From: Takakia lepidozioides
Taxonomy: Eukaryota > Plantae > Bryophyta
Reading direction: 5' to 3'
Assembly (NCBI GenBank): GCA_030704615.1
Contig: CM060734.1
Span: 60,016,001 to 60,080,000, forward strand
Length of the DNA stretch: 64,000 bases
The stretch's first letter is position 1; each line of letters starts with the position of its first letter. Made by a program: the position numbers and the translations under genes. This document shows positions 6,101-48,662 of this stretch, in pieces. The notes under the pieces were generated by a model that was not told the DNA's origin, ran no database searches, and saw nothing but the letters and a program-made list of their open reading frames with translations.

Positions 6101-9100
6101 TGTGTGGGCAACCTGAAGACAATATCCACTTTCTGATTCATTGTCCTGGGTACTCTCACTAGAGAGAAACCCTCTTCAAATCCATCCTGTACCATTGTTT
6201 ACCAGTTTTGAAAACTCAAGGCTGAGGCAAAAGCCCAGGCCCTTTTGAGGTCTAGTTATTGGGCAAATCACACACAGCAGATTGATGTTTGTGTGAAGGG
6301 ATTTCTAGAGGATATCTGGAGGTACTTTCTGTCCCTCTGTGTTCCGCTCAAACTGGGCGCGGGGTCAATGGCCACAAGGCTACAGCAAACAATGTCTTAT
6401 GAGTACATTCTCTCTCTCTCTCTAGACATCCTCCAGACATCCTTTGTGCCATCTCTTCTATGTATGAGATTGTCACTGGCATGGTCAACGTCGCTGGTGA
6501 ATTCTCAGCCGAGGTCCACAGCAACATTGGAGTCAAACAGGGCTGCCCCCTTTCACCTACCCTGTTCGGGATCTACATTGACGCCTTGGAGAATTACATA
6601 TCAAAAAACCATGGGGTTGGGGTTGTTGGAGTGTCAAGGTTATAGCCCTTGCACGGCACTTTGAGAACAGAACGGGACGGGTAGCTCAGTGGTAGAGCAC
6701 CCCACCGGAATGGGGGAGGTCCTAGGTTCAATCCCTAGCCCGATCACACGCCAGTGGTTTTCCAACAAGGTTGGGGCGGTGGTCAGAATGGGTGGGCATT
6801 AGCTATAAGGGCTATGCCTTGAGGGGGAGTGTTGGAGTGTCAAGGTTATAGCCCTTGCACGGCACTTTGAGAACAGAACGGGACGGGTAGCTCAGTGGTA
6901 GAGCACCCCACCGGAATGGGGGAGGTCCTAGGTTCAATCCCTAGCCCGACCACACGCCAGTGGTTTTCCAACAGGGGTACCATTGGATGGGGGACCAACA
7001 CAATCAGATCTCCTCTACGCTGATGATGTTGCCTTTTGGCACAATCCCCGGTCTTCCTGCAACGCCATCTCAAAATTTTGGAACAGTTCTGCAAAGACTT
7101 GGGATGCAAGTCAATCTTAGCAAGACCAAGATCATGGTCTTCAATGGCAAGGCTGATCGTAGATTCATCTTCAACCAGCAGGAAATTGAGATTGTGAAAT
7201 CATACCGATACCTGGGTCTGGTTATCCACTCCCCCAAGTTTTACTTTGCAGCCACTGCCTTGGACAGATTGACTAAAGGTAAGGCGGCCTCCGTCCGCCT
7301 TCAGGCCAAATGCAAGCAAATACATCTGCGTCATCCCCCAACCAAAAGGTGGCTGTTTGACACTGTCGTCAGCCCTGCTACCATCTATGGTTGTGAGTTC
7401 TGGGCACCTGGTGTCCCTGTCTCCTGGTGGGAAAAGAATTTGGAACCATTACAGTCATCTTTTCTCCAAGCAATGCTTGGCGCCAGGAGCACAACTCCAT
7501 CTCAGATCCTAGGTGCAGAGTTCGCATGTGTACCATTGCAATCCGAGGCCCTCTTCCGGCTTACAATCTTTCTCCATAGATTACAGGCCCTTCCACCCAA
7601 GGGGCTCGTGGCAAGGGCCCTCACAACATCTATGAGGCTCAAAGCTGCAGGTTTCAGGAACTCCTGGTATGCTCGAGTGGACAGTTTATTTCAACGTAAC
7701 GGACTTTCTACTGCTTTCCTATTACCAGTGAATCCAGATGAGGTGGACATCACATCCAGACATGACCGCAACAGACTCATTAGTAGAGAGCTGATGGAAT
7801 TACATGTCAAGAGAACTTGAAAGCTACCCAATCTCACAACAAAGCTCCACTTCTATCGAGAGACATTCTTGGTGCTCCGTGATGATAGAATCTTGAGACC
7901 AAATTACCTTTCAGCATCCTTATCTCCTTCCCTCCTGAGGGCATTGGGGCGGTTCAGGGTGGGTTCCCACAACCTACGGATAGAGACTGGCAGATGGGAA
8001 AACCTGCAACGGAGGACCGCCTATGTCCAGCTTGCATAGGGCGCAGCAAGGAAATTGAAACTGAAGAACACTTCTTCTTCTACTGCCCTCTATACTACGA
8101 GATCCATGGGAGATTCCACTGTTTATTCAGTGGAACCCAAACTCTCACTGATGTCTTTCACTATGAGGATCAAAAATGCTTGGCAGCCTACCTGCACGAG
8201 GCCTTCACCCTTAGACAATCGCTAGAACATTAATTGTGGTTTCTGGATTTGTTCCTCTCTCATGTTCTTCCATTTTGTCCCATAAGCTCTATGAGCTTTC
8301 CGCGGACGTTATAAAGCACCATTTCATTTCTAATACTTTTGAAAGCAGCACATATATCTGTTTCTTAAATTTGTCTTAGGAGAAATTTGATAGTCTATTC
8401 TGGATTATCCTTTCTTATGCCAAAGTGGAATTAGGGTTTTGTGCCTTCCACTATCTGCTACTACTACATACATGGTCTGCGAAGACAGAAAGGTTCCATG
8501 CAGGTTCCTAATGCACCAACATGACATTTGATGGCGAACTGATCTCTGATATCTTGTGCTAGGCCCGCTAGCGGCAGCATACTGGAGTATATGTGTAGAC
8601 CTTCTACACGATCCGGTCAATGTACATTGCTCTTCTGGCTGGTCTACTGTAGCCGATGCCTTGAGTCAGAATTAGGAAACCCGAAAATGAGAACAAAGTT
8701 AGTACCAACCACTTGTCGAGTCAATGGCATTCCTTACTTCCAGCCACTTGACTCTAAGAATAGTGGTGATGTTCTCTGAGCTGCTAATATGCACGATATG
8801 AACAAAGGAAGTATGACAGAAACAGTACTTACGTCACAATCTTCTTACCAAGAGAGGGCCTCTGGAATTTCTTCTTGGCTTTATCATTCTGTGGTACCAG
8901 TAGCATTGGGCTTTGCTGAAGATATCGTAGCCCCTTTCTACTCAAACGCTTCAGGTGGTGGTGGCAAAGTGATGTACTCCTATAACTCCCTTGCATGGTT
9001 GTACCCAAATGGGGTTTAGAATCTGAGATTGGACATTATACTCACTGATTCATTTTGGAAAGCTATAGCACGCAACAGGGCCTGCCATCCACCTCGCACA

Positions 9101-14340: not shown

Positions 14341-14687
14341 CGGCTCTTTGAGCATCAGTATAAAAGGACTGCATGCAACTTAGAAGGCATCGATGATGTA
14401 CTTGTGCTATGGTTGTGAGACTTGTTTGAAGGACTCATTCCCAAGTAAAGCTATGGCTTCCACCACTCCTGTGTAGAGAGAATGTGAGGGAGAGTTGTTT
14501 GCTGTTTTTTTGTATGCAAGGACAAGACTTAGTCGCAGCTACCGCAGCCTCTTATGCGGTTGGGCAGAAATTTGCCCAATAATGTTTTTTTTTCTTTGAA
14601 CGGTTGGGCAATATCACATTAATATATCTTATTTGGGCAATCCAGTTGTGAAGTTTATAATAATTTAGACAGGTCATGAGCCAAATA

Positions 14688-18318: not shown

Positions 18319-18826
18319 ATTATCAAACCTACCAACTAGTCTTAAATAATTTATCTGATTTGAAATAAATTAGGCAACACTGACCCAACTATTCTGAGGT
18401 GATAACGGCACCGTTACATTGTTTGACATAAGGCGCTACGTGGATCAAGCTATCAATCAAGCTAACAACATCCATCCACTTGTTTGCTTGGTTGCTTGGT
18501 GTAGATTGAAAGGCAAACAAGTTACTTTGAGATAGAGGAGAACTAAGTAGAGCAGCTTTGCTAAGAGGGTAGAGAACATTGCAAGGCTGCCAGCAGAGCC
18601 ACAGAGACCACAGTGTATACATGGAAGTTTGATGGCAATGATTTTTATTTTTATTTTTATTAGGAAGAGGGGGATTGTAGCCCTGTAAATTTATTAAAGG
18701 ATAAGGAAAAATAACCTTATAGGAAGCCATAAGGCAGATTGCTGAGGTACCACCAAGCCTAAAAGTCCAGATGATCGAGAAAGAAGAGAACAAAGCTAAG
18801 CTGAGGAGCCATCAAGATCGCTTCCT

Positions 18827-19086
18827 TGTTGGAGGTGTCAAGGCTATAGCCCTTGCACGGCACTCTGAGAACAGAAAGGGACGGGTAGCTCAGTGGTAGA
18901 GCACCCCATCGGAATGGGAGAGGTCCTAGGTTCAATCCCTAGCCCGACCACACGCCAGTGGTTTTCCAACATGGTATCAGAGCCAAGGTTGGGGCGGTGG
19001 TCAGAATGGGTAGGCATCAGCTATAAGGGCTATGCCTTGAGGGGGAGTGTTGGAGGTGTCAAGGCTATAGCCCTTGCACGGCAACA
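18827..19086 (+). mobile_element. TRIM with tRNA-like LTR, copy 2 (PBS intact, 3' LTR internally deleted)
   Basis: 5' LTR 18827-18971; PBS TGGTATCAGAGCC at 18972-18984 (complementary to the initiator tRNA-Met 3' end); PPT before 19048; 39-bp 3' LTR 19048-19086 keeps TG..CAACA ends; 5-bp TSD TTCCT (18822-18826 and 19087-19091). Confidence 0.95.
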
Positions 19087-19761
19087 TTCCTAACTAAGTT
19101 AAGCTTATTGGGAACCGAGTAAGGAGAAAGAGATAGAATTGTGCGCTTCCAACCATCTGAAAGGAGGGTCACCTTGTCAAGAAACAGATCATAAGAACAG
19201 CCTATGAACTCCCTCTTTTTCTCTTGGGAGCATCAAAAGAGAGTTGGAAAAGCTTGCAAGGGGTTTTGATACGAGGTTTGTAGAACCTTATCTAAGCACA
19301 TGAAGCTCACATGAATCAAGATAATTTCAAAACATATTTAATCATAATTTTCAAGATTTGGGCATTTTTTGATGAAAATTTATAAAATTTCAGCATTTGT
19401 TTTCAATAATTTTGCATGATTGGACTATTGATATTAAGTTCTGAATTTTATGTTTTTTTTGGGAAAATGCTTAAAATAATTCTAGCGACGACCTAAGGTC
19501 GGAAGCTAGTTTAGCGTAGAGCAGGAATAGGGTGCCATAGTGCCACATCATCGTCGCCACGTCATCGTAGCCAGGTCATCGTCGTCGTCAATTTCTTTGG
19601 AATCTGCCCAGACGGCCCGCGCGAAATAGGCCAATAGAAATCGTCGCGCCAACTTTTTCGGAACTGCCGCAATGCCCGGATCTTGATTTCCTGAACTGCA
19701 GGAGCTCTGCCGCCATCGTTCATCTTGCAAGCTGCAAACTCTCAACGAATTGAGGAAATCC

Positions 19762-21881
19762 ATGCTGAGGTAGATTGTAGCCCTGCGTTGTCTTTTACAT
19801 TCCAGTCGTCTCTCACCGTCACCCATTCCTGCATTTTCCCAACGGACCCATATCCCAGAATGTTTTGCAACGGCGGCGAAGGACGAGGGTTCATCTGCAG
19901 GAGCTTCCTCCTGGATGCAGAGGCTGAAGAGTGTGTTCAAGAGCAAGACACCTTCATCAAATTCTTCCCAATTGGATACTTTTAAAGAAAAGTCTGTGTC
20001 TCAGCATGACCTTACAATGGAAAGTGAGTGCCATTCTACTGTGTCGCTAGGTGCTCTGCTACAGATTCAACAATCTAATATCATAAAAGGCCCTCACTTG
20101 CACAATGTGACTGCTGGGAGTTGATCAGTATGAACCGTTGGATCACTTTGTTTATTTATTGCAAAGGACACTTCACGAATTTCTTAGCTGAATGAAATGA
20201 TGGTGCAGACAAGTCTGCTACTGGTACCAATTTGGCTTATAGGAGACAATGGCGGATATGCTTCTTCCAACAACATGCGACTGCAGGAAGGAACCCAGTA
20301 GGTGTAAATTGGAGACTGAAGAGACAATACCCTAAAGCCTAGACTGGGCCTGCATTATGATGATTCGCAATATATGACACCAGTATAACAGAGGGGGGGA
20401 TGTGGAAATTGGCTGATGGTTTCCGCCGGGAATATAAGTCTTTTGTGGGAAGAGTAACAGTGATCAAACAAGCAAGAAATTTTATGTCTTCTTTCAATGA
20501 GTGCTTGAAGACCCCAGATTGAGAGCCCAATCCTGTAGTTTGCAGCCACGGTGGTCAGAGGTTGGAAATTAGCCCAATAACCGGTTTAGTATAAGTATGT
20601 ACTCGATTTGTGAATTTGTCTTTGAAATCTGGCTCTGCCTCTCAACAGATTTTCTTTGTGTTGTACAGATTTTGCAGATGAGTTGAAGAAGGCACGCCAG
20701 TTTGGAAGTCTAACGACATTTGGACGCGGCCTGCCCAGAGGGGGTGAAGTATCAGCTGTAAAATCCCTTGAGAGACAGGAGGGGATTCTTCGATCCCTAG
20801 CCCGACATGACCCTCTGGTATGCTTTTTCATTACATCTGAATTTGGTTGCTACAGGAAAGTCTGTTTCAATGTTTAATGAGAGCACCAACCTTCAGAAGT
20901 GGTAAACAGTTAAAGAGGGCTGCATACTGGACGGCCAGGCTTGCAGGTGAGCACACGATGTCTTCAGAAAGTAAGCAAGGGGCATGGGGCTAGGCATGGT
21001 GTGGGTCCAGCGAGTTGGAGAGCTGCACAAGGCTGAGGTGGCAACGGAGTGGGGGTGCACTGTGCGTGGTGTTGATGCCGTACTGGCAAAGTACGAGTAG
21101 GCAAAAGAGACAAACAGGCGTGTGATGAAGCTTAAAGAGGAAGGCAAGTCGCTTCCCAAGTCTCTTGACGAGGTTAGTCTCCCGTGTTTGCTGCCTAAGA
21201 GCTCTTGTATGTTTTTGTTATGCTCTGGCAGCTACATTCTCTTCTCAAAATCTCTCCTCCCGCTGTCTCACCAATGGCTTTCCACTGTTTGCATGTTTCC
21301 TACCATCTTTTAATACCTTGAATGATGAAATATATTTGTCCCTATACCTTGAATATAAGGTGGCCATAGCTGGGAGATGAAGGGTCTGGCCTGAGGTTGA
21401 CACCATGGATTTGTTGGTTGGTGAAGGTGGAAGAGTTGATGGGGGGTCGCTGGAATGCGGCAGCATCTGTGAATCTTGCAAAAAGTGGACAACTGAGTCG
21501 AAATGCTGCTTGTCTATGCGGCTCTGGAAAGAATTACAAGAGGTGGGTTCTCGCTCTTTTCACAGCTCCTCTCATCTCCCTGCCCCATTCCAATGGGAGT
21601 GTCGTAAGGCGGAGAGAAGCAATGTTTCTCGCTGCTTTATCTCACACTCATACTTAAATAGATGGATTTTGTGGCTAGATGAGTCAAATTTCAAACTTAA
21701 AGCAAAGCAAGTAGTACTATCAAACATCATGTAGCCTGGCAATAAGCTGGCCGTGAGGCATCTGTGGCTTGAACACTATCTTACAAGCAAAGTATGCTCC
21801 AAATGTATTGCCTATCCTTTACTAGACCATGACTGGTAAAAATCTGGGGAGTTCTGTTGCAGGTGTTGTGGGAAGTCATAA
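19762..21881 (+). pseudogene. Complete intron-containing SEC-C motif gene (At3g04950-like), pseudogenised
   Basis: ATG 19762 with a transit-peptide-like N-terminus; exons about 19762-20023, 20669-20817, 20947-21172, ~21395-21542 and 21863-21881 give WMQRLKSVF, FADELKKARQ, KLKEEGKSLPKS and NLAKSGQLSRNAACLCGSGKNYKRCCGKS*. Premature TAGs at 19771-19773 and 21098-21100. Family assignment is from memory of the motifs. Confidence 0.8.
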
Positions 21882-22059
21882 GCTTGGACTTGAAACAGGG
21901 AAGTCATGCTGCACAAGCACGCACTTATGAAGAGTTTGTGCTCTGTTGTGAGGTCAGGTGGCCTCCTGCCGTTTTATCGTTTTGGTCACCTACTTTCACT
22001 CCAAAGGGACTTTGACAGATGCAACTGGGTCTTTACATCTTTACATCAGCACTTCCTCT

Positions 22060-25000
22060 GAGCAAATGATGTGCAAAGGGGTGAAGCCCAACCGCATAAC
22101 GTTTGTTTGCATTGGCAATGTGTGTGCAAGCCTGGCAGCCCTGGAAAGGTGCAAAGAGGTCCATGGTGACATCGTCAAATCTGGAATTGTACCCGATGTC
22201 ATTCTGAACAGGGCTGGACATGTATGTCAAATGTGAGTGCATCGAGGATGGAAAGGGAGTGTTCGACAGTATGGCTGAATGAGATGTGGTGTCGTGGAGT
22301 GCGACGATTGTAGGATATGTACAACAAGTATGCGAGATGGAGGCTTTGGAGACCTATGAGCAATTGATGTGCGAAGGGGTGAAGCCCAACCGCAACACAT
22401 TTGTTTATGTTTGCAATGCGTTCGGGACCAAAATTGGCGGATCTACCTTTGACCATAAGGGCCATCCCCACACACGGGCTTCAATATGCCAACCTTGCAA
22501 GCCTAGGAGCTCTAGAAAAGGGGAAAGAGGTCCATGGTGACATCGTCAGCTGGATTTGTACCAGATGTCATCCTGAACACTGCCCTGGTGGACATGTTGC
22601 CAAATGTGGGTGCATGAAGGATGCGAAGGGATTTTTCAAATGGCTGAACAAGATGTGGTGTCGTGGAACGCGATGCTTTCAGGGTATGCACAACAGGGGC
22701 ATGGGATGGAGGCTTTGGAGACCTATGAGCAAATAATGGGGGAAGGGGTGAAGCCCGACCACATCACGTTTGTGTGCGTTTGCAATGCGTGTGCAAGCCT
22801 GGCAGCCCTGGAAAAGGGCAAAAAGCGGTCAATGGTTGCATCGCCAAAGCTGGAACTATACCAGGTGTGATCCTGAACACTGCCCTGGTGGACATGTATG
22901 CCAAATGTGGGAGCATTGAGGATGCAGAGGGAGTGTTCAACAATATGGCTGAACGAGATTTATTGTTGTGGAACGTGATGCTTGCAGGATATGCACAGCA
23001 GGGCATGGGATGGAGGACTTGGAGATATGCACAGCAAGGGCAGGATGGAGGCTTTGGAGACCTAGGAGCAAATGTTGTGCGAAGGGGCGAAGCCCAACCA
23101 CATCACATTTGTTTGTGTTTGCAATGCTTGTGCAAGCCTGGGAGCTCTGGAAAAGGGGAAAGAGGTCCGTGTTGACATCGCCAAAGCTGGAATTGTACCT
23201 GATGTCATTCTGAACACTGCCCTGGTGGACATGTATGCCAAATGTGGGTGCATTAAGGATACGAAGGGAGTTAATTTCAACACCATGGCTGAACGAGATG
23301 TGGTGTCGTGGAACGCGATGCTTGCAGGGGTATGCACAGCAGGGGCATGGGATGGAGACTTTGGAGACCTATGAGAAAATGATGGGGGAAGGGGTGAAGC
23401 CACATCACGTTTGTGTGCGTTTGCAGTTCATGTGCAAGCCTGGCAGCCCTGGAAAAGGGCAAAGAGGTACATGGTTGCATCGCCAAAGCTGGAATTGTAC
23501 CAGATGTGATTATGAACAATACCCTTGTAGACATGTATGCCAAATGTGGGTGCATTAAAGATGCGGATGAAGTGTTCAACAGTATGGTTGAACGAGATTT
23601 GGTGTCATGGAATGCCATGCTTGTAGGATATGCACAGCAGGGGCGCGGGATGGAGGCCTTGGAGACCTATGAGCAAATGATGGGTAAGGGGTGAAGTGCG
23701 ACCACATCACGTTTGTGAGCGTTTGCAATGCTTGTGCAAGCCTGGCAGCCCTGGAAAAGGGCAAAGGGTGCATGGTGACATCATCAAAGTTGGAATTGTA
23801 TCAAGGTTGCAATGTGTGTGCAAACCTGGGAGCCCTGGAAAATGGGAAAGAGGTCCGTGGTGACATCGTCAATGCTGGAATTGCACCAGATTCATCTTGA
23901 ACACTGCCCTGATGGACATATGCCAAATGTGGGTGGATCGAGGATGCGAAGGGAGTTTTCAACATTGTGGTTGAAAGAAATGTGGTGTCGTGGAACGCTA
24001 TGCTTGCAGGGTATGCACAGCAGGGGCACGGGATGGAGGCTTTGGAGACCTATGAACAAATGATGGGGGAAGTGGTGAAGCCCTCATGGAGTGCAATGAT
24101 TGCAGGATATTAAAGTGGAGAACAACCTTCTTGACGCCAAATGTGGGAGCGGAAAAGTTGCACGTCAGGTTTTCGACAAAATGCCTGAACGAGATGTGGT
24201 CTCATAGAATGCCATGATTACAGGATATGCTGAGCATGGCTATGTTGAAGAGGCTTTCAAGATACAAGTAAATGGAACTGGACGCGATGACACCGAACAG
24301 GGTCACGTTCGTTTCTGTTGTCAATGCATGTGTCAGTCTAGGGGCCCTGGAAAAGGGCACGCGGGTCCATGCTGATATTAACAAAGCTGGGGTTGTGTCA
24401 TATATTAACTTGGACAATGTCCTTGTTAACATGTATGCCAAATGTGGGAGTGTTCACGATGCACGTCAAGTGCTTGAAAATATGGTTCAGCAAGCATGGA
24501 ATGCCATAATTGCAGGATATGCTCAGCATGGGTGTAGTACAGAGGCCTTCCAACTATTTGAACAGATGCAGCAGGAAGGCTTGAAGCCAGATGGTATCAC
24601 CTTCGTTTCTCTTCTCTCTGCTTGTAGGCATGTAGGCCTGGTGGATGAAGGCCACCACTTGTTTGGTTCCATGAGTAGAGATCATGGCCTCACTCCTACA
24701 GTGGAGCATTTTTGCTGCATTGTGGACCTTCTTGGCCGTGTAGGCCGATGAGATGAGGCAGAAGAGTTCATCAACAAAATGCCAATTGAACCAGATGCTC
24801 TGGTTTGGGGGACCTTGTTTGCTGCTGCCAAAATTCATGGGGATGTGGAGGTAGCAGAACATGCAGCAAAATCTCTTCTCAAGTGCGATCCCAACCACCA
24901 TGCAGCTTATGTGCTGCTATCCAACATCTACGCCGCATCTGGCATGTGACAATATGACACAACATGATGTGGTTTCATGGAGGACCATGATTGCAGCATA

Positions 25001-25818
25001 TGCTCCGCATGAGTATGGCAAGGAGGCTGTCGAAATATATGAAAAAATGCAAAATAAAGGGTCTAACGCCCAACACAAACAGTATCACCTTTATATGTGT
25101 TCTCTCTGCCTGCAGCCACACTGATCTATTGAATGAAGGAAGATGCTACTTCGATTCCCTGAGTGAAGATCATGGTCAATCTGACAGTAACACACTTTGG
25201 CTGCATGGTGGACCTACTTGGACGTGCGGGACAATTGGATGAGGCAGTTGACCTAATTAATAAAATGCCAATCAATCCAAATGTTGTGGTGTGGAAGGCC
25301 TTGCTTGGTGCCTGCAGAATCCATGGCAATGTGGAGATGGCTGAATGTGTGGCAACATCTATTCCCAAGTGGGATGAACATGATGCCGACTTATGTGGTG
25401 CTATATCAAACATCCATGCTGCAGCTGACAGGTGGGATGATACTGCAAAGGTGAGAAGAATGATGAAGGTGAGAGGGGTTAGAAAAGAGCCAGCTGACAA
25501 GTTGCATCCCAGAATTAAGGAATTCCATGCTGAGCTGAGAAGATTGTCTGGGCAAATGAAGGAGGCGGGGTATGTGCCTGACACACGCTTTTTATTGCAT
25601 GATGTGGAGGAATTTTCTCTTAGCCACCACAGTGAGAAGCTGGCCATTGGTTTTGGGCTGATCACCACGACTCATCAAGAATCTTCGAGTGTGTGTAGAC
25701 TGCCACACCTCCACCAAATTCATCTCAAAGATTGTTGGCCGAGCAATTGTTGTATGGGACACTAACTACTTTCCACCACTTTGAAGATGGGATTTGTTCT
25801 TGTGGTGATTACTGGTGA
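22060..25818 (+). pseudogene. PLS-class PPR-E-DYW pseudogene mosaic
   Basis: About 7 tandem ~300-nt P-L-S triplets (LVDMYAKCG..RDVVSWNAML.GYAQQG..ITFVCVCNACASL) at 22060-24080, then two separate L2-S2-E segments and [20 protein letters not shown] (TGA 25816-25818). Many frameshifts and stops. Confidence 0.92.
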
Positions 25819-26143
25819 AATGATGTTTTCTTGGAAAGATGCTAGTGTCTTGTTTCATTCATACAGTGAATGTAAGGGTATTTGGGTATGTTGATATTGA
25901 TTGATGTGGCTTGTGAAAATTGAACATTGAAATGCAGATCCGCCATTTTCTTCCAGGGAAAAACAAAACATGGGATCTCTGCATGTAACACAGTGGGGAT
26001 GACCCACCCCTTTTTTTGTGAAAAATTGAACGTAGTTCTCAGAATTCGTCGCTAGTAGTGCGGAGCAACGCGAAGCCCTAGTTCTAGCGATGACCGAAGG
26101 TCGGGAGCTAGTTTAGCGTAGAGCAGGAATAGGATGCCATAGT

Positions 26144-26255
26144 GCCACGTCATCGTCGCCACGTCATCGTCGCCACGTCATCGTCGCCACGTCATCGTCA
26201 CCATGTCATCGTAGACACGTCATCGTAGCCAGGTCATCGTAGGCACGTCATCGTC
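26144..26255 (+). repeat. 14-bp tandem repeat GCCACGTCATCGTM x8 (x3 in element A at 19542-19583)
   Basis: Units counted directly; copy number differs between the two element heads. Confidence 0.95.
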
Positions 26256-26853
26256 GTCGTCAATTTCTTTGGAATCTGCCCGGACGGCCCGCGCGAAAAA
26301 ACCCAAAGCGCCAAGTTGTTTTGGAATTGCCCGGACTGCCCGGTTCTTGAAGTTCTTGAACCGCAGGAGCCGCCATCGTGCACCTTGCAAGCTCTCAACA
26401 GTCTCGCTGCTCAATGCAAACCGTGGCCTTTCCCTCATTCGATCAGCTTCGATTTTCGCGCAAAGGCTCCGCAGATCACATCATTTTGCTTGCTTAGGCT
26501 TGTGAACGTGTTTTGGTCGTGACAGCCACATCATCAATCATGATGGTAAGGTTGTTTGCTTTTGGGCCCTTTTCCAAGCATTGAATAGAAAGTTTGGGGT
26601 AAGGAATCAACAAGAAGTGATACAAAGTATGCTGATCAGCATAACAATGTTTTTCTGATGGAGTGAGATGTTTCTTAAACTCAACAATGGTTGTCACAGA
26701 CACATTCAAGGATAAAAAACTAACTGAGCATCCAGACGGGGAACTTTGAAGGCAGTGGAGATTACTGAAAGTACCAGAAGGAGAAAGAGGCTTAAATGGA
26801 TACTGTCTTCCTTCAAAATATGACTTGCTAAAGAGTGTGTTTTGAATTGGCAG

Positions 26854-28058
26854 TACGGGTGAGAGATCATGTCACCTCCCGTCTGATAGGGCACAATCAG
26901 GAGGTGTGTGGCCTCAAGTGGTCACCGTCAGGCCAACAGCTAGCAAGTGGAGGCAATGACAACTTTCTCCACATTTGGGATGCAGCTGTCACATCATCAT
27001 CACCTGAGTCAGCAGTCTATCTACACAGGCTGGACGACCACCAAGCAGCTGTGAAAGCACTTGCCTGGTGCCCCTTCCAGGCCAACTTACTCGCGTCTGG
27101 AGGGGGTACTGCTGATCGCTGTATGGAACACGCAGACAGGTGCCTGTATCAACAGTGTCGACACTCATTCCCAGGTTGATGGTTTGCCGATGAGATCGAT
27201 ACTTCCTTGAAGAATAGTAAAATCTAGCTTACATTGTACGATGTGATATTATTAATTCCACTGTCCCATTTCTCGTGTAATGAGAAAGTTGTAGTGCACC
27301 GTATGTAGTTTCTTATGACTGAAAATGAGATGTTTGAAAAACTGTATTATATATGTTCCTCTAAATTCAGTTGGTGATATCTGAACTTTTCAGAACTGCA
27401 TGGGCAAGTTAGGATGGCATATGTGAAGATGTTCTGCATCACACAAGGTTTCACTATTATTGATCTAGGTCTGGTGGTCAAACATTGGGTTGTGCACTCA
27501 GGTGTGTGCTCTGCAATGGAACCGGCATCGAAAGGAGATACTGAGCAGCCATGGGTTCAGCCAGAATCAACTGTGCTTGCGGAAGTATCCATCTATGGCC
27601 AAAATTGCTGAACTCACTGGTCACACTGCCCATGTTCTCCATCTTGTCCAGGTTTTAAGACTTCTTTCTGTTGACATTCTAGTGTTTCCAAAGATGACAA
27701 TTTGCAGAATTTCATTTCATATTACACTTACGTTTGTACTACTCTAGGGTTCAGAGGAGCCGTGTTGCAGCTCTGGCTCGAAAATGCACATGTGGATCCA
27801 TAATGCCACTGACGGTCCAACATCGTCATTGCCATCGCCATCGTTTGTTGAAATTGAGTGAATTACTTTTATGTTTGTGACTTTCTCATGATTTTAGTGC
27901 TGTAATTTGTGTAGAGCCCTGATGGAACAATGGTAGTCTCCGCTGCTGCGGATGAGACACTTCGCTTTTGGAAGGTATTTGGGATGGCACAACCTGTCAA
28001 GAAGGTCTCCATAGGAGGAACTGGTGATCTGTCATTGCGAAGTATTAACATAAGATAG
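26854..28058 (+). pseudogene. CDC20: 3' fragment (three exons) of the APC/C activator CDC20
   Basis: Exons 26854-27174, 27502-27651 and 27915-28058: [56 protein letters not shown] and a C-terminal IR tail. Frameshifting deletion near 27121; no N-terminal exons seen. Confidence 0.92.
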
Positions 28059-28989
28059 GAGCGCCAGCTGTGGACTACAAAAATCAGAGCTCCAACATAG
28101 CAGGAAGCAAAACATTGATGCCTTGGGACAGGGGGTCACCACCTCAACAGAATGCTGGTTTTAAAAGCATAATGAAATTCATGATCCATGTCCAGTTTCT
28201 GCTGTAAATGGTGGGTTGGTTGACAAACTTCAATGTTTGGCATCACTGAGGCAGAAAACATTTCATGAGGTGAGGACTGACACTTTCCACTTTTGTCTAT
28301 TGGGGGGCTAATAGGACATAGGTGGCCTGTCCCACCCAGGATGCTCATATCTAAGGGCATGCTGTGGACCAAATTAAGTGTGCACATCAATTATTACAAG
28401 CTAACACTTCAGTTTTGCAACATGGTTGTCGAAGGACTTGCATGTTAAATGTAAGTTGAAAGACCTGCAGACCCAGATGTCTCTCACAGTGACTGCTTGT
28501 GAAAAGCAAGAGCCTGCTCTCTTGTGGGTGCAAGCTCAATTTATGATGTGGTGGATTGCTTGTGCAGTGGGGCGTGCACATTGATCATAGACTTCTTGCA
28601 GCGGCCATATGGGACAAACATGACCTGCCTACAATGGGTATTACAAGAATTGCATACTCTTGTTTATTCCAAGATCATTCCCACTCAATGCATGCATCTG
28701 CTGGCCATGGGTTCTCCCACCCACTGGACGATTACATTATCTTATTCCTACATTGGAAGTTTGATGAGACACTCAAAACAGCATCCTCCCATGGCTCAGC
28801 AGTCATGCCCTGCCTTTCTTTGGAAGATGATTTTCTGCAATTGTCTTGCATATCCTTTTGTGGAGGGTAGGCCTACAAATCACCATCAGGGACTGAGAGG
28901 GGCCATAAGCGCCGAATGTATCTACCATTTTGAAGACTCATGAGAGCAAGAAAGTTTTCAATCCTGTGTATAAAGCCTCTCAGTACATT

Positions 28990-31980
28990 TGGTCTCAAAG
29001 ATTGTTGGCCGAGCAATTGTTGTATGGGACACTAACCGCTTTCACCACTTTGAAGATGGGGTTTGTTCTTGTAGGGATTACTGGTGAAACATTGTCTTGT
29101 TTGTTGGAATGGTGCGGATGCCTTGCTTCATTCTTTGATCTGTGTAGCTACTCAATTCATCCACCATTTCCTGAGAATAATGGCCATGATGTACTGTTGA
29201 GGGGCGCATTTCTGTACCATAGATCCAGATGAAACAGTAGCGGGGTCTACAGGTAGTTAGTGAAGGGGGGATTTTGACTGTCTCTGGTGATAGTGGAAGG
29301 AAATTAGAGTGCTGTCATATTTCTGGTGTGGGTGGTGGATCTTCTCCAGAGCTTGAAGATGAAAGTGAATATGATTTGCAATGACCTTGATTAGAGGGGC
29401 AAAGGGAGTATTTGACAATGTGACTGAACGAAATGTGGTGTCGTGGGTATTTGATGATCGCAGGATATGCCCAGCATGGTTGTCATAGGGAGGTCCTGCA
29501 ACTATTTGAAGGAATGTAAAAGAACGGCTTGAAGCCGGACAGTATCACCTTTATATGTGTTCTCTCTGCATGCAGCCACACTGGCCTACTGAATGAAGGA
29601 AGACACTACTTCGATTCCCTGAGTCAAGATCATGGTGTTACTCCAACAGTAAAGCACTTTGGCTGCATGGTGGACCTTCTTGGACGTGCAGGACAACTGC
29701 ATGAGGCAGTGGACCTGATTAATAAAATGCCAATCAATCCAGATGTTGTGGTGTGGAAGGCCTTGCTTGGTGCCTGCAGAATCCATGGCAATGTGGAGAT
29801 GGCTGAACGTGCGGCAACATCTATCCTCAAGTGGGATGAACAAGATGCTGCAACTTATGTGTTGCTATCAGACATCCATGCTGCAGCTGGCAGGTGGGAC
29901 GATGCCACATCAGTTTGGAAAATGATGAAGGCCAGAGGTGTGCAGAAGGAGCCAGGTCGCAGCTACATTGAGGTCAACAACAAAGTGCATACATTCATTG
30001 TGGATGACAAAATGCATCCACAGATTGAGGAAATCCATGCTGCGCTGAGCAGATTGTCTGGGCAGATGAAGGAGGCTGGGTATGTGCCTGATGTGTTTGA
30101 GAATACGGCTGAATAAAATGTGTTTAGGGGGTAATGCCTACCAGGATTTTCCTCGGAGTAAGGGAAATGACAGAGCTCACATGCTCTTGTAGTGTCTGCA
30201 CGCAGATCAAGCAATGAGCAACAAACAGCTCTGGCTAGAGTTTTTCTCAGATGCTTCACAGTGGTGGTTTCATAATGTAAGTTTTTTCATCTTGTACAGC
30301 TTTGGTGTGGTGCTCCTGGAGATTCTCACAGGAAAGCGGCCCTCAGATGATTTCTTTAAGGATGCGAGCCACACTATGATCCAATGGGTAAGGAGTGCTC
30401 ATATTGGCTTGTCTTTTACAGCTGCTCAGATGAGTGGACAGTTTATCACAATATTAGTAGCTTGTGCATTATCGGACATGTTTTCCACACATTTGAAGCC
30501 ACACCTAATTGCCAACTTCCAAACACATGGTGCTTGGATTTTCCGTTCTCGATGCATGAGCCAGCCTAGCAGACCTGGAAAAGGGCAAAAAGATCCATGC
30601 TGATATTATCAAAGCCAGAATTGAGCCAAATATCGTCCTGGAAGCCCTTGCCAACATTATGCCAAATTTGGGAACATGGAGATGTGCATCTAGTGTTTGA
30701 CAATATGGCTCGACAAAATGTGGTCTCATGGAGTGCGATGATCGGAGGATATGCTCAGCTTGGATGTGGTAAAAAGGCTTTGGAGATCTATGAGCAAAAC
30801 AGAAAGGGGTTATGCCCAACCAGGTAACGGTTGTGTGTGTTCTCAATGCATGTGCCAGCCTGGTGGCTGAACGAGATGTGCTCTCCTGGAGTGCAATGAT
30901 TTCAGGATATGCCCAGCATGGAGTTGGTAGGGAGGCTTTGGAGACATATGAGCAAAAAGGAGTTTTCTCTTTGCCACCAAAGTGAGAAGCTGGCCAATGG
31001 TTTTGGGCTGATCAGCACGACCCCTAGGATGCCTCTCCGTCTTATCAAGAATCTTCGAGTGTGTGGTGACTGCCACACCTCCACCAAATTCATCTCAAAG
31101 ATTGTTGGCCAAGCAATTTTTGTATGGGATGCTAACCACTTCCACCACTTTGAAGATGGGATTTGTTCTGGAGTGCGATGATTGCAGGATATGCTCAGCA
31201 TGGGTTTGGTAAGGAAGAGAGGTGTAGGAAAGGAGCCAGGGCACAGCTGTATTGAGGTGGACAACCGGGTGCATACCTTTGTTGCAGAAGACAAACTGCA
31301 TCCACAAATGGGGGAAATCCATGCTGAGCTGAAGAGAGTCTCTGAGCAGATGGAGAAAACCGGGTACATGCCGGACCAGACACTCGTTTTGTATTGCACG
31401 ATGTGGAAGAGCAGCAAAAGGAATTTTCTCTCTGCCACCTCAGTGAGAAGCTGGCCATTGCTTTTTGGATGATAAGCACACCCTCTGGGACGCCTATCGG
31501 CATCATCAAGAACCTTTGGATGTGTGGTGACTGCATGTACAGGGCCAGGATCAAATCAGGCTCAGCGTGTGCCATGAACGAACTAAGCGACGGAGAGGCC
31601 CAACAGTATTTGCAGCTTAGATCGACGGACAATCTTGGCTTCAACAAACTTGAATGACAACTTCCCCTTCAGAAATTTGCGAGCTTGATCCGCTTATCCT
31701 ATGCTTATCCTATGCTTATCCTTTGACAAAATGACTCAACAAGATGTGGTGGCATAGAACACCATGATGGCAGGATATTCTCAACATGGTAGTGGCAAGG
31801 AGGCTCTTCAGATCTATGAGCAAATAATGGGGGAAAGGGTGATGCCAGACAAGGTCACGTTCAATTGTGTTCTCAATCTGTGTGCAAGCCTGGGGTGCCC
31901 AGGAGACAGGTAAAGATGTCCATGCTGCAACCAGATGTTGGGGTGTGGAGGGCCATGCTTAGTGCCTGCAGAGTTCATGG
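28990..31980 (+). pseudogene. Scrambled PPR, E and DYW fragments
   Basis: DYW end 28993-29087; L2-S2-E1-E2-PG box 29400-30095 (KEPGRSYIEVNNKVHTF); DYW core 30960-31168 ([15 protein letters not shown]); second PG box/DYW start 31210-31535; further PPR pieces to 31980. Domain order is permuted. Confidence 0.9.
30300..30387 (+). pseudogene. Isolated receptor-like kinase exon (subdomain IX-X)
   Basis: SFGVVLLEILTGKRP..TMIQW with intact AG and GT flanks; no adjoining kinase exons seen. Confidence 0.8.
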
Positions 31981-32552
31981 CTATGTATCAACGCGTGTGA
32001 TGGGCACTTTTGGGTACGTTAAATGCTACTTACATAATCTGATTGCCAGCGTATAGTCTGATGCATTGGCAACTCTCAAGGTTAGTGGTTGCATTCTCAT
32101 AGTAGATGGTAATTGTATAGAGCCACAGTGCAGCCACCAGTGGAGAGGTTACTCTAGCTGGGCTGTAACAAACCCTGACCTACTTAGGTGATCAAGCACA
32201 GGCTTGTGATATGGTAATGAGCAACTAACAACTGATTCTCTCCATGTGCAACTCCAAAAGTATTATTGCAACACTGCTCTAACAGGCTGTTTTGTAATTT
32301 AGATTAGAACAAGCAGCAAACTGCAAAAGGCTGTGGCAATGCCTACAAACATATCCGAAATATACAAAAATGATAAGCACACATAACTTTCTGCGGTTCT
32401 CAGATTTCTTCCATTGTAAGCCTAATCTCTTTGTATGGTGGTATGGGAAAGGTAACCTGAATTTTGTGAAAAGATTTACCCGCTGGGTCAGGGTATTATT
32501 ATTATTATTGACTTTATTGAGATTTGAAAAAGCTTCTCATTTAACAATAATA

Positions 32553-33103
32553 GGGTCATGAATGCTCGCACATGTGGCTGAAGCGGGGCCGTGTGTGGCA
32601 GAGGGGGTGGGGGGGGGGGAGGGTGGGAGCGCCCCTACCGGTCTGCTGGCCCCACAAAACACATGAGCTAAGGGGGTAACACATGAGCTAAGGGGGTGGG
32701 GGAGGGTGGGAGCGCCCCTACCCGGGCCCCGCCAAGTTGGTCTGCTGGCCCCACAAAACACATGAGCTAGTGTGCTGGGGTCCACAATATGCACATAAAG
32801 CATTAATTATTGCAAGGGCTTGTAGAATGTGGTGGGTAGTCTGATGATGGTTAAGAAGCATTGGATGTTAGACTTGAGTTGTGGTGATCAAATCTCATTG
32901 TGTTGTACTGTATCAGTAATGTGTGTTATTAAATATATATTTTGTCGAAGGGTCCAAGCCGGTCTGCTGGAGGGGGTCTCCCGTCGTCTGCTGGAGAGGT
33001 GCCAGTCCGCTCGTCGGTTTGGCAAGACCCCATGAATGGGCGGTGGGCTTATGAGCTCACCCCAAGGGTCGTACTAACGGGCTCGCCCGTGCATTCATGA
33101 CCC
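32553..33103. mobile_element. Non-autonomous TIR element (PIF/Harbinger-like GGG termini)
   Basis: TIR GGGTCATGAATGC(T/A)CG, 15/16 match; GC-rich internal duplications at 32605-32770. TSD is not clean. Confidence 0.65.
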
Positions 33104-33175
33104 AATGAGAGGCTTTGAAAAATTGTTGGGGTGCCACTGGCAACTTGATATTTTCAAAACAATAACTATTACCAA

Positions 33176-33398
33176 GAGTGAGTAGCATAGTTGGTTGCTG
33201 CACTGATGCACCCAGATGATTCTGGGATCAAATCGTGCTACTTGAGTGGTGTGGTATGCTCTTCTCCCACTACCCTTGGGCAGTGTCCCATCAAAAAGCC
33301 TTCATGGCGAGGTTTGAGGTTATTTTCTCCTCACTATCAAGGGGCGTGATTTGTGAGCTGTCGCACGTAGGTGTTTCCCTTAAAATAAAATTTAAAAA
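33176..33398 (+). mobile_element. tRNA-type SINE copy 1
   Basis: A-box-like TAGCATAGTTGG, B-box-like GGATCAAATCG, body shared with copies 2 and 3, A-rich tail. Confidence 0.7.
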
Positions 33399-33692
33399 AT
33401 AACTATTTTGTCATAAAAGTCACATTGAACACATCATTGGGTGTACCTATGGTAGCAAATATGTCGTATAGTTCAAACAAAGCCTCCATGGAAGAATAAT
33501 TTTATCTGCATCAAACAATGAAAGGCGGAGACGTGTGTATGTAATACCATGCAGATGACCCCGCCTTTGTGAAAATTGAACGTAGTTCTCAGAATTCGTC
33601 GCTAGTAGTGCGGAGCAACGCGAAGCCCTAGTTATTTTCTGCCCAACCGTATAAGAGGCTACAGTATATATAGGAATATAGCACCAACAGTC

Positions 33693-33907
33693 AGAAGCTC
33701 AGTTTGTAAAGTGCACTGAGTGCCATCCGGATGACCCTGGGGTCAAATCCTGCTACTTGACAGGTGTGGTACGCTCTGTTCCCCCTTCCCTGCGCAGTGT
33801 CTCATCAGAAAGCCTTACGGCGAGGTTACTGAGAGGTTATTTTCTCCTCTCTCTATCAATGGGCCTGATTTCTGAGCTGTCGCTCCCAGGTGTTTCCCTT
33901 TAAAAAT
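33693..33907 (+). mobile_element. tRNA-type SINE copy 2
   Basis: AAGCTCAGTTTG..GGGTCAAATCC, body ..GAGCTGTCGCTCCCAGGTGTTTCC, A tail; lies in TA-rich flanks. Confidence 0.75.
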
Positions 33908-34076
33908 TAATATATATATATAGCGTCGTCTAAGCTCCTGCCACTACTGTATAGCGAAATGACAGAATATGAAGCTGGAAGACCGTTTGTGGATGAAGTC
34001 TGTTGATTTTTTGAACTCCGCTGTTTGCTCTGCATTGCCCTGTGGAAGTTCGTAGAGCTGGCTGCCCCGCGGGGGG

Positions 34077-36673
34077 ATGGGTTCGGATGCCAAGGTGAGA
34101 TTTCAACTCATTCTGATAGCGCTCATTGCAATGACCTTAAGCGGACTCGGATGCCAATGCTCATGGTATGGAGGTTTCTATGAGGTGTTCCTAACCTTTT
34201 TGTTCACTAATTTGTGCGCCAGGACAATCAAGCAGCCGAGGGTGAGATCAAAGGGGAGAAGCGATGGTCGTTGACCGACTTTGACATTGGAAAGCCTCTC
34301 GGCAGGGGCAAGTTCGGGAATGTCTACCTTGCCCGTGCGAAACAGGTGAGTGCTCTGGGTCTGTCTCCTCTGTCAGAACAAGCTCCACCTATCTAGTTTA
34401 GCTGAAATGTTTCCTCTCGTCTGTTCGCTCCGTGCTTTTCCTTCCTGGTTATTTAGTAACACACAATAGCAAGTAATATACTGATTGTCAACGGATATCC
34501 AAACCCGGCTACAGTGCAAACCCTAGCTCTGCAAAAGTCCACGAAAAGGTTGGCCAATCTGTTATTCTGAATTCACACCTCTGTATAGGGCTTGTGCATT
34601 TACAGATGATCGATACTGTTTTAAAGTACATGAGACCGTCTCTCAGGGAGCCTATAAACAACTATTGCTTGTCCTCTGATGAAGTGGTCATAAACCTCAG
34701 CATTAATTTGTTGTGGTATGTTGTTTTGAATCACAGTTTCCTGCTGGTTTTTGCAATCGGTATGCCCTGGTATGGTTGAAAATTAACTCGATTATGTGCG
34801 ATTGCAGAGCAAGTATGTCGTCGCTTTGAAGGTTTTATTCAAGAACCAGCTTCAGCAATCCCAAGTTGAGCATCAACTGCGTCGTGAGATTGAGATCCAA
34901 TCCCACCTTTGCCATCCTAACATTCTTCGCCTGTGCGGGCACTTCTATGATCAGCTCAGAACTGGAATGCACACTGTGCTGTGAATTCCATGTTCCATGC
35001 CATGAATACCGGTTTCTTCACTACCAACCTGCGACATGATGAAAAATGTCAGGAAGAGGTCAAAAAGTACATTCAAGAAAGAGAAATGTCTCTAGCGTGA
35101 TGGTTATATCTTCCTAGTTTCCGTGTGTGGTAGGAAGCACATGATGAGATCTTTGGATTCCCCTTCCAACAATTCACTGTGCGGAAAAGTCCTATATCTG
35201 ATGCTTCTTTCAATGGGATCTGGCGAATGCTTGCATGAGCTACATCGTGGGCAGCATTTTTAACAGTCTTATTCACTGTTTCAGTCAAGAGTTTATCTGA
35301 TGCTTGAGTATGCCGCGAAAGGTGAGCTCTACAAGGAGCTCCAAAGGTGCAAGGTCTTCAGTGAAAAGAGAGCAGCCACGGTATGATTATGTCCATCCTC
35401 CCGTTTCAATCTGTTTGGACCAAATGAAACTGGTGAGTCCCTCTGCTAAAGACCCTAGATCGCTTTTTTTTATGAGCCTGACGTTTCCAAACCCTATTGC
35501 TGTTGTGTAAACTTGATAAAATTCACTCCCAGGTGGGAATCTATGAATTTTACTTCTGTAGGAAAGCGGCTGGTCTCTTTTGAGATCAACCCTATGGCAG
35601 AACACCCAATATGGGAAGGAAAAAGGTATTAGGCTGCCGATCTAAATGCCATGTCTTATTGTGCAGTATATTGCCTCCCTTGCCCGCGCTCTGATGTATT
35701 GCCATGAGAAGCATGTCATTCACCGTGACATCAAGCCCGAGAATCTACTGATAGGACTGAAGGTAATCAGATCTCTCATTTTCCGTGTCTTCCGAGTACG
35801 CTTATCTATGTCCAATTTCAGTTCTACTCTAATGGCCACAGTGCTGTCGTTCTAATATAGATTCTGTTGGGCGAGCAGGGTGAGCTGAAAATAGCCGACT
35901 TTGGGTGGTCCGTGCATACTTGCAACAGACGCAGGACTCTCTGTGGAACATTGGATTATCTCCCTCCAGAGATGGGTATGCACCTCACCCTTGTTTTAAG
36001 TTTCTGATCTTCAACGTCATGTCCTTATCAGACTGCTAACTTCTCTGTTCTGTGCTGCAAGAGGGTAAGGAACATGATGCCGGCGTCGACGTGTGGAGCT
36101 TGGGCAATCTTTGCTTTGAATTCTTGTATGGCACCCCACCTTTTGAAGCGAAGAAGCATTCTGACACTTACAAGCGGTAACTAGCTCCCGTTCTGTCCCT
36201 AGTTTAATCCTTCCAACTTATGAAACACACTATGATGACATATCAGTACTCGTCAGTTGAAGCTCTTAAGTGAATTCGATACTTGATGGTGCCTTAGTTC
36301 AACTTCCGTCAAGCAGAGCCTGTTGATCTAACTTGCTTCCTTATGCAGTATTGATCGTGTTGATCTGAGATTCCCATCAAAGCCTGTGATTTCTTCATCA
36401 GCCCGAGATCTTATCACTCAGGTAATTTGCTGCCCCAAAATTCTTTCACTCGTCTGTGGGCTCTGCGCGCACTTGATTTTGCTCTTGCAGTATCACGTTC
36501 GCAAGCGATTTCAGCAATATCAGTGAGTCTAATGGAGTGACATGAAATTGATTCGATGTGTGCAGCTCTTGGTGAAAGACTCTACTCAACGATTGCCTCT
36601 CCATAAAGTGCTTACACATCCATGGATTGTAAGTAATGCTGACCCCAGTGGCGTATACAGTGGCCACAATTGA
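34077..36673 (+). CDS. AUR: Aurora kinase, 9 exons, with splice-site lesions (possible young pseudogene)
   Basis: Exons 34077-34094, 34223-34345, 34808-34954, 35285-35380, 35667-35762, 35879-35975, ~36062-36176, 36349-36421 and 36566-36673. Motifs [33 protein letters not shown] and [16 protein letters not shown]. The donor after exon 3 reads CT. Confidence 0.85.
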
Positions 36674-36949
36674 CAGAGTAGGTTATGACATCAGTGACTG
36701 CGGGAGGAGCCTGTCTTATGCTGAGAATACTGTTCAGGGTTGAGACAAATCCCATAAGATAGTTTTTCCACTCACCATAACCTGGAGGATTTTCTGATGT
36801 GGTCTAAGGCATAGCCAATGTCTGCCTCATCGCCCCTGGGCAGCGGAACCATTAGTGTTAAAGGGCCAACTTACTCCAGTCGATATATTAAAGATTGGAT
36901 TACTGCCAGAGAGGTCCACAGGTGCGCAATCGTTTTACAGAGTTTCCAT

Positions 36950-44630: not shown

Positions 44631-45166
44631 GATGACTCCGGGCCGGCGTAACTAAGACCCACTTGGCCTTGCGGCTGCTGGCGCTTTTCAGGGGTGGGCC
44701 CTATTCCCATGTTCAAATAATACTACTACTAATAATAATAATGAAGTGAAGTTACCGTGAGATATGAAATATTACCAGATGCAGACAAAGACAAGACAAA
44801 GTTGCTTTAACGTCCAGTGACTGCTGCTCAACACACAGGCCATCGAGGGCCCAATGGACGGTCTGAAGGCACATGTTGCACAGGCGAGGGGTAACCGGCA
44901 TTTAGGTTGCTAAGGAGATTCGGATCTTCACAGCTTCTTGGCACAGATCTGAGAGAGGGAGAGGAGGGGGCAGGGGGAGGACGGGATTGATCGAGGGAGG
45001 GAGGGAGGGAGGGAGGGAGGGACGAGAGAGGGGATGTGATAGAGAGGGCCAATGGATCTTCTTTGATGTGGGTATCGGTTGGGGGAGGGTTTTGTGGGGA
45101 GTTGTAGTGGTGGTGGCACTTGGTGGAGTAACAAGGGTTGGCGCAAGCGGTTGGGAATCGGCGGGA

Positions 45167-45997
45167 ATGGCTTCTTCGTTGCTAGAGGCTGGATGGCTGT
45201 GGTTGACCAACAATTTCAGTGATTTTCAGCTAGCGGCGCTGGGAAGCTTCTTCATTCACGAAGGTGTGTTTTTCCTGTCAGGTCTGCCATTTCTTTTGAT
45301 GGAGAGTTGGGGGCTGCAAAAGTACAAGATTCAAGGCAAGGTGAATACGCCAGCGGCACAGCAAAAGTGTGTCTTGAAGCTACTGCTGTACCATACCTGT
45401 GTCAATCTGCCCCTCATTACCTTGTCTTACCCGGTCTTCAAGTACATGGGCTTCACCAGCAAATTGCCCCTCCCATCCTGGAAGGTAGTGTGTTTTCAGA
45501 TCCTGTCATACTTCATCATGGAGGACTTCATCTTCTACTGGGGCCATCGCATCTTGCACACCAAGTGGCTCTATAAGCATGTCCACAGTGTACACCACGA
45601 GTATGCCACACCATTTGGGTTAACCTCAGAATATGCTCATCCATTGGAGATTCTGTTTCTTGGTTTCGCCACCATTTTTGGGCCTGCCATCACTGGTCCT
45701 CACCTACTCACACTCTGGATATGGATGAGCCTGCGGGTGCTGGAGACTGTGGAGGCTCACTGTGGCTACGACTTTCCTTGGAGCCTTTCCAGAGTTTTTG
45801 CTTTCTATGGGGGAGCCGAATTCCATGATTATCACCATCGGTTGCTCTACACCAAGTCAGGGAACTACTCATCTACTTTCACCTACATGGACTGGATCTT
45901 TGGTACAGACAAGGGGTACAGGAAGCTGAAGGCTTTGAGGAACAACCCAGATGAAAAGGCAAGCAATTTGGAGGCAAGTAAGGTGGAGGCAAGTTGA
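45167..45997 (+). CDS. SMO2: Sterol 4-alpha-methyl oxidase (SMO2/ERG25 family), intronless, 276 aa
   Basis: Open frame with the three His boxes HRILH, HSVHH and HDYHH, plus EYATPFGLTSEYAHP and C-terminal YMDWIFGTDKGY. The true start is probably ATG 45167 (MASSLLEAGW). Confidence 0.95.
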   Translation: MASSLLEAGWLWLTNNFSDFQLAALGSFFIHEGVFFLSGLPFLLMESWGLQKYKIQGKVNTPAAQQKCVLKLLLYHTCVNLPLITLSYPVFKYMGFTSKLPLPSWKVVCFQILSYFIMEDFIFYWGHRILHTKWLYKHVHSVHHEYATPFGLTSEYAHPLEILFLGFATIFGPAITGPHLLTLWIWMSLRVLETVEAHCGYDFPWSLSRVFAFYGGAEFHDYHHRLLYTKSGNYSSTFTYMDWIFGTDKGYRKLKALRNNPDEKASNLEASKVEAS

Positions 45998-47884: not shown

Positions 47885-48335
47885 AATTCAAGAAAAAAAT
47901 CCCCTGCATCAACATGAAAACCCTGGCAGATGGAAAGTAGGTACATGCCCACATTATCCAAAGTGGATTCTAGCCAAACACCTTCATCGGCAACACCCTT
48001 GTCAACATGTATGCCAAGTGTCGGAGCATGGTGGATGCCCAACAAGTGTTTGAGGAGATGCCTGACCGAGATACAGTCACTTGGACAATGCTGATAGCAG
48101 GATGTGTGAAACATGGACATCCCGAAGAGGCCTTAAAAATCTATGAGCAAATGCAATGGGAATGGGTGACCCCGTACAGGGTCACATTCATTTGTGCTCT
48201 CAATGCATGTGCCAGTGTACAAGCCCTGGAAAGAGGCAAGCAGGTCCATGCAGACAATATGAGAGTTGCATATATTAATTTAGAAAATACCCTTGTGGAC
48301 ACATGCAAAATGTGGGAGCATCATAAAGGATGCTA
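47885..48335 (+). pseudogene. PLS PPR fragment
   Basis: NTLVNMYAKCRSMVDAQQVFEEMPDRDTVTWTMLIAG..VTFICALNACAS; frameshifted and truncated. Confidence 0.85.
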
Positions 48336-48499: not shown

Positions 48500-48662
48500 A
48501 GGGGTAGTATTTGATCTCCACAGTTTGAGTGGGCCCCTATCAGCAGTTCTGTACATGGGCTTACTCAGTGGTGATGGCTCTTGCCATCATGTTTGCAACC
48601 GGCACTATAGGGTTTCTGACATCCTTCTACTTTGTCTACTATCTCTTCTCCTCCGTGAAGAG
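48500..48662 (+). pseudogene. TM9SF/EMP70 (transmembrane-nine) C-terminal fragment
   Basis: VFDLHSLSGPLSAVLYMG/YSVVMALAIMFATGTIGFLTSFYFVYYLFSSVK with a frameshift. Confidence 0.8.

Follow-up and report, generated by a model that had tools for sequence, protein, structure and literature searches.

The origin of the thousands of PPR editing-factor genes in seed-free plants is an open question. A 2026 survey credits PPR expansion in these plants to retroposition, and in the same survey Takakia has 2,016 PPRs, mostly dispersed duplicates with limited retroposition features (PMC13386178). The stretch of Takakia lepidozioides DNA analysed here (64,000 nucleotides of contig CM060734.1, hereafter the window, in whose coordinates all positions are given) contains two adjoining repeat units filled with pieces of PPR-DYW and other host genes. 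It therefore raises the question of what kind of element gathered and multiplied this sequence. We propose, with a probability of roughly 0.8, that both units belong to a non-autonomous HLE2 (Helitron2/Helentron) family present in many copies, whose mobilisation in trans and route of gene capture we infer.

Terminal structure and joints of the two units

In a self-comparison of the window the head and the tail each occur twice and no more, in the order head-tail-head-tail. The units and their terminal features are the following.

19481-26082, + strand: unit 1, non-autonomous HLE2-type element of 6.6 kb, beginning TCTAG and ending CTAGT
19482-19509, + strand: 5' hairpin of unit 1, with the 10-bp subterminal inverted repeat (19482-19491) as its left arm; folding z -2.70
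19542-19584, + strand: 14-mer tandem array of unit 1, 3.1 copies
19585-19735, + strand: rest of the shared head in unit 1, 84-87% to unit 2
25980-26082, + strand: tail of unit 1, with 3' inverted repeat (26046-26055), GCGNAGC motifs (26060-26066, 26070-26076) and terminal CTAGT
26083-33632, + strand: unit 2, non-autonomous HLE2-type element of 7.55 kb, seamlessly joined to unit 1
26084-26111, + strand: 5' hairpin of unit 2, carrying the subterminal repeat with a 9/10 match; folding z -2.05
26144-26256, + strand: 14-mer tandem array of unit 2, 8.1 copies
33536-33632, + strand: tail of unit 2, with 3' inverted repeat (33596-33605), twin motifs (33610-33616, 33620-33626) and terminal CTAGT
19473-19480 joined to 33633-33638: rebuilt empty site, a perfect 14-bp AT palindrome formed by the two flanks

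The shared head measures about 255 bp (19481 to ~19735 in unit 1, 26083 to ~26400 in unit 2), with 93% identity over the first 61 nt and 84-87% in the parts behind the array. The preliminary description of this DNA had reported such a head, with a 5' hairpin and a 14-mer array of variable length, and this is what we find: in both units the hairpin folds better than shuffled sequences, and the array differs between them (3.1 versus 8.1 copies). The near-identical tail that it had also reported is likewise present, since the tails are identical over 61 nt (26022-26082 and 33572-33632) and about 86% similar over some 100 nt. The inverted copy of the head motif in the tail is well founded. It consists of the 10-mer CTAGCGACGA at 19482, with reverse copies at 26046-26055 and 33596-33605 and a 9/10 match at 26084, and in each unit thus occupies nt 2-11 and the stretch 37-27 nt from the 3' end; at one mismatch or fewer it has five matches against 0.75 expected, a number reached by none of 100 shuffles. 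The GC hairpin that had been placed before the terminal CTAG is not borne out by folding, the tails scoring about +1.1 (z) against shuffles, and what stands there instead is a pair of 7-nt GCGNAGC mini-hairpin motifs, which as a pair occurs only in the two tails across the window. GNA mini-hairpins are unusually stable, a kind of stability that the folding tool used does not score. The exact head and tail patterns had no match in JGI metagenomes.

When each unit is read as TCTAG...CTAGT, the middle joint (26082/26083) is seamless and both outer joints fall between T and T; all three joints (left flank/unit 1, unit 1/unit 2 and unit 2/right flank) are T|T. The head-to-tail arrangement and the T|T junctions of the preliminary description are thereby confirmed, and its extent of 19481-33631 needs a change of one base, both units being found there and the right end being best placed at 33632. 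Its statement that target-site duplications (TSDs) are lacking holds in part: none longer than 3 bp exists at this one locus, but another cut would give a 3-bp ATT repeat, so that a single locus leaves their absence unproven. The same ambiguity over T's has been described for HINEs. The AT palindrome at the rebuilt empty site may reflect either chance or a target preference. In a second sample, one contig (X5 record 10) spans a tail-head joint that is spaced identically and differs at six positions, which indicates that such joints recur.

Host gene pieces inside the units

All cargo pieces of both units lie on the + strand and run from head to tail. In unit 1 they are:

19742-19769, + strand: weak trace (28 nt) of a PPR E+ motif immediately after the head (E 0.003 in the window)
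19858-21543, + strand: disrupted copy of a plant SEC-C-motif gene that retains an intron, with two exons matching P0241
22057-25818, + strand: decayed PLS-PPR array with two E regions, E+ and DYW; triplet period 302 nt
25819-25979, + strand: non-coding flank that follows the DYW stop; abundant in DNA runs, rare in RNA runs

In unit 2 they are:

26515-28300, + strand: 5'-truncated CDC20/Fizzy piece with its 3' flank; three GT-AG introns, 8-bp deletion at 27123
28980-29133, + strand: DYW end with 3' flank, 85% to 25723-25860
29390-30113, + strand: truncated piece of PPR, E, E+ and the start of DYW; longest clean frame 195 aa
30295-30390, + strand: short exon piece resembling a receptor kinase, as judged by eye; its 32 aa give no Pfam match
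30542-31534, + strand: patchwork of PPR, DYW, PPR, E+ and DYW; of its four joints, two show microhomology (7 bp and 5 bp)
31722-31994, + strand: further PPR/E piece

Homology searches with spliced models were made one exon at a time. The SEC-C exons (20981-21172 and 21427-21543; 75-81% to P0241) enclose a GT-AG intron (21173-21426), and a stop replaces a Trp; the parts of 19858-21543 upstream of these exons presumably belong to the same gene. The CDC20 piece is the 3' half of the gene, with introns at 26546-26853, 27175-27501 and 27652-27914 for which two presumed RNA runs supply confirmation in the form of spliced contigs. These contigs differ from the copy in unit 2 by about 1% and keep the 8 bp that it has lost, which implies that the transcripts stem from the parent gene or from another copy.

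PPR-like sequence makes up 5.8 of the 14.2 kb inside the units, versus 0.4 of the 49.8 kb outside them. The 3.8-kb PLS-PPR/E/E+/DYW stretch of unit 1 (DYW stop at 25816-25818) changes frame at least 17 times and is interrupted by about 10 stops, and the first DYW of the patchwork in unit 2 is without its first zinc-binding His and its last residues. Neither unit contains an intact DYW or an open frame leading from a PLS array through E and E+ to DYW. A homolog search with the cleanest PPR piece gave a best match of 62% identity and none from the same organism. The interiors had been described as different mosaics of intron-containing host gene pieces, and both halves of that statement require qualification: the pieces and their order do differ, but a related E/DYW module is common to both interiors (92% over 212 nt; 85% over the DYW end and 3' flank), and introns are present in the CDC20 and SEC-C pieces but absent from the PPR pieces. 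Mosaics of intron-containing host fragments, mostly non-functional, are also carried by gene-capturing maize Helitrons (HLE1).

One lone, decayed PPR piece lies outside any head or tail (47887-48306), beside a short membrane-protein-like exon (48529-48660); PPR fragments thus also occur without these ends.

Copy number, boundary and transcripts

Contigs of four public sequencing runs, two presumed RNA runs among them, were placed on 25500-28300. Summed contig depth is not copy number, and overlapping contigs inflate it; with this proviso, the deepest DNA run gives about 3.3 × 10^5 for the head, about 2.5 × 10^5 for the tail core and 4 × 10^5 for the coding part of DYW. The corresponding figure is 385-700 in the CDC20 cargo, and a contig of unique flank has about 50. 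Head and tail are thus roughly 600-800 times as deep as the CDC20 cargo, and this rough contrast points to a head-tail family of the order of 10^3 copies. Heads and tails are about equal in depth and, to judge by this similarity, may be paired genome-wide. The CDC20 piece is young and present in roughly 5-14 copies by depth. The 5' boundary of the element is fixed by fifty contigs that share a start at 26082 (TT-CTAG) but are preceded by AT-rich flanks unrelated to one another (agreement 0.39).

The flank behind the DYW stop is abundant in DNA (depth 1.4 × 10^5 at 25821 and 7.9 × 10^4 at 25894) and almost missing from the RNA runs, in which DYW transcripts diverge from the window at the stop and run into varied tails. 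It follows that one DYW-plus-flank module was amplified as DNA, and that expressed DYW genes are mostly without that flank. The link from flank to tail is thinner (depth 4.9 × 10^3, 17 contigs at 25958), so that only part of the DYW-flank modules is seen to adjoin the tail. The PPR cargo consists of amplified pseudogene modules, not shown editors, and DNA transposons have multiplied editing-gene sequence here. The earlier suggestion that this family copies and rearranges PLS-DYW sequence is accordingly supported at the DNA level; its further suggestion of a contribution to the expansion of working editing factors is not, every PPR/DYW piece being broken and the amplified 3' flank scarce in the RNA runs.

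Between head 2 and the CDC20 piece (26346-26533), contigs occur in a presumed RNA run at a depth of 80-160.

Probable assignment to HLE2 and the explanations weighed against it

The assignment to the non-autonomous Helitron2/Helentron type with captured host genes, which the preliminary description had made, is supported by the terminal structure, the T|T ends, the high copy number with its sharp 5' boundary and the multi-copy, intron-containing cargo. The terminal anatomy of HLE2 as defined in three studies (PMC11417382, PMC4067079, PMC5148889) is matched by the units; the stem-loop that HLE2 has behind its right repeat is weak here by folding, its position being taken by the twin GCGNAGC motifs. 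Helentron in the narrow sense denotes elements with an AP endonuclease fused to RepHel; Pfam scans of open stretches of the window, 85 of them lying within the units and 109 elsewhere, found no RepHel or other transposase.

Three other explanations were considered. It is very improbable that short head-only and tail-only repeats came independently to surround an old, PPR-rich duplicated region whose interior never moved as one piece, or that this interior moved within a cut-and-paste element that made a 3-bp ATT duplication. The possible ATT repeat agrees with this explanation, as does an empty site known only as a reconstruction from the flanks; against it stand the succession of head, interior and tail, repeated in both units with joints exact to the base, an interior CDC20 piece that is cut short, exists in several copies and differs from its transcript by about 1%, and other contigs in which the DYW flank runs into the tail. 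The unit ends, moreover, are not the terminal inverted repeats of a cut-and-paste element. Derivation from canonical Helitrons (HLE1) appears very improbable, even though the units start with TC and show the 3' CTRR signature (TCTAG at the start; CTAG, then T, at the end) and even though their multi-gene cargo is co-oriented and heavy gene capture is typical of plant HLE1. The base before TC is T, not the A of an A|T insertion, both here and in 50 other contigs; the units have no palindrome of 16-20 nt at about 11 nt from the 3' end, while the asymmetric inverted repeat and 5' hairpin, which HLE1 is without, are both found in the units. We give the least weight to non-autonomous elements of Replitron type, for which CTAG would be a short direct terminal repeat. 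Replitrons, which have a Y1 HUH transposase (Rep without helicase), are common in mosses and mostly without TSDs (PMC10288648), and CTAG does stand at both ends of the units. As a 4-bp palindrome it is however a weak direct repeat and the sole direct terminal one; Replitrons are 2-4 kb long, their descriptions mention neither asymmetric inverted repeats nor T|T targets, and the remaining features of the units all agree with HLE2.

Proposed mode of movement and capture

Under the HLE2 assignment, we propose that a RepHel transposase made elsewhere in the genome would bind the 5' hairpin and the inverted subterminal repeat, peel off one strand from head to tail and insert this strand into AT-rich DNA between two T's, leaving no duplication. 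Another, dissimilar member of the family would then have inserted exactly at the end of unit 1, an event that can be proposed because unit 1 ends in T, another T follows and the enzyme would bind the ends. The preliminary description had named tandem arrays as a rolling-circle hallmark; for this pair, a simple concatemer from a single circle can be dismissed, the interiors and the array lengths differing between the units.

Cargo may have been acquired at the DNA level between conserved ends, by read-through that starts at the head of one copy, crosses host DNA and stops at the tail of another; alternatively, gaps may have been filled from other loci. Simple growth by bypass of the 3' end was rejected: the youngest cargo adjoins the head and there are no inner tails, so that read-through or gap filling fits better than stepwise bypass. 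It can be hypothesised that acquisition took place at different times, PPR-DYW having been captured long ago and later amplified as the backbone of the family, and CDC20 recently. Microhomology deletions or template switches could have cut tandem PPR-DYW copies into the present patchwork, and the net effect would be a mass production of PPR-DYW pseudogene sequence. A retrocopy origin of the whole cargo was rejected, as the CDC20 and SEC-C pieces keep their introns; the intronless PPR part may have had its first origin in retroposition.

Relation to known elements and to PPR expansion

The closest parallels in terminal design are DINE-1 of Drosophila and the HINEs of mites, which share with the units subterminal inverted repeats near the 5' end and tens of bases from the 3' end, another short inverted repeat nested at the 5' copy, tandem repeats in the centre, and a T-rich target with TT on each side and, as far as the one locus studied here shows, no clear TSD (PMC4067079). 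They differ in that their repeat is 12-15 bp (10 bp here), whereas the 3' structure of the units is the pair of 7-nt mini-hairpin motifs before CTAGT, and the units reach 6-8 kb with several host genes; gene capture by Helentrons is known but was rarely found in that survey (PMC4067079). FoHeli1 and FoHeli2 of Fusarium oxysporum likewise have a 5' hairpin with a 3-nt (GAA-type) loop, a hairpin arm that recurs inverted (30-50 nt before their 3' end), a TC(A/T)AG-like start and self-insertion near their own ends; unlike the units, they encode RepHel and end in ATTTT, and no multi-gene host cargo has been described in them (PMC5148889). HelenSM92 of Sphagnum magellanicum, compared here by its description, is a moss HLE2 with short terminal inverted repeats and a TT insertion site, but is autonomous and has one captured GIY-YIG domain (PMC11417382). 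In their interiors, mosaics of several mostly non-functional, intron-containing host fragments, the units resemble maize Helitrons (HLE1) and Pack-MULEs (PMC5861414), of which the former differ by an A|T target with a 3' palindrome and the latter by long TIRs with a TSD.

The view that this variant may be undescribed is consequently to be narrowed: HLE2 in moss is already published (PMC11417382), and it is the heavy cargo that is reported as rare for this type (PMC4067079). HLE2 ends are missed by standard Helitron finders (PMC11417382). Our literature search, of incomplete coverage, returned no paper on PPR-DYW capture by Helitron-like elements or on Takakia Helitrons, and no report of heavy HLE2 gene capture or of a link to the 2,016 PPR genes of Takakia.

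These units indicate that gene capture by HLE2 can be as heavy as that by canonical plant Helitrons, and a family on the scale of a thousand copies with PPR-DYW modules offers a direct, countable alternative to retroposition. PPR counts in the Takakia genome may be inflated by pseudogenes borne on transposons. A bolder conjecture, which we regard as unlikely, is that HLE2 moved whole PLS-E-DYW genes so often that a real share of the working, dispersed editing-factor genes of Takakia descend from rolling-circle copies, in-register joints making new PPR arrays. If true, PPR genes would have expanded by way of DNA copies in a genome whose retroposition signals have been reported as weak.

Other features of the window

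A 31-bp stretch of the right flank (33636-33666) matches 14540-14570 on the - strand at 90% and is probably the end of another small repeat; the site at 14540-14570 was rejected as an empty-site paralog, its upstream bases being different. A SINE-like repeat of about 235 bp, with an A/B-box-like head and an AT-rich tail, has copies at 33171-33406 (in unit 2), 33683-33921 (just beyond its tail) and 49649-49823 (- strand), which are 78-86% alike and have no Rfam match. To the left of unit 1, a very small TRIM-like LTR element occurs at 18826-19083 and 6623-6976, whose LTR contains a tRNA-Pro(CGG)-like cloverleaf (ARAGORN and Rfam matches) and is followed by a primer site of Met-tRNA type and then a polypurine tract. 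An Aurora-kinase-like gene with introns, showing a few odd residues in one exon, lies to the right of unit 2 (34190-36700). Further to the right, among LINE fragments, an intronless open frame for sterol 4-alpha-methyl oxidase (SMO2; 44987-45997) looks like an intact retrocopy, its closest relatives being from Sphagnum (86%) and a liverwort (80%).
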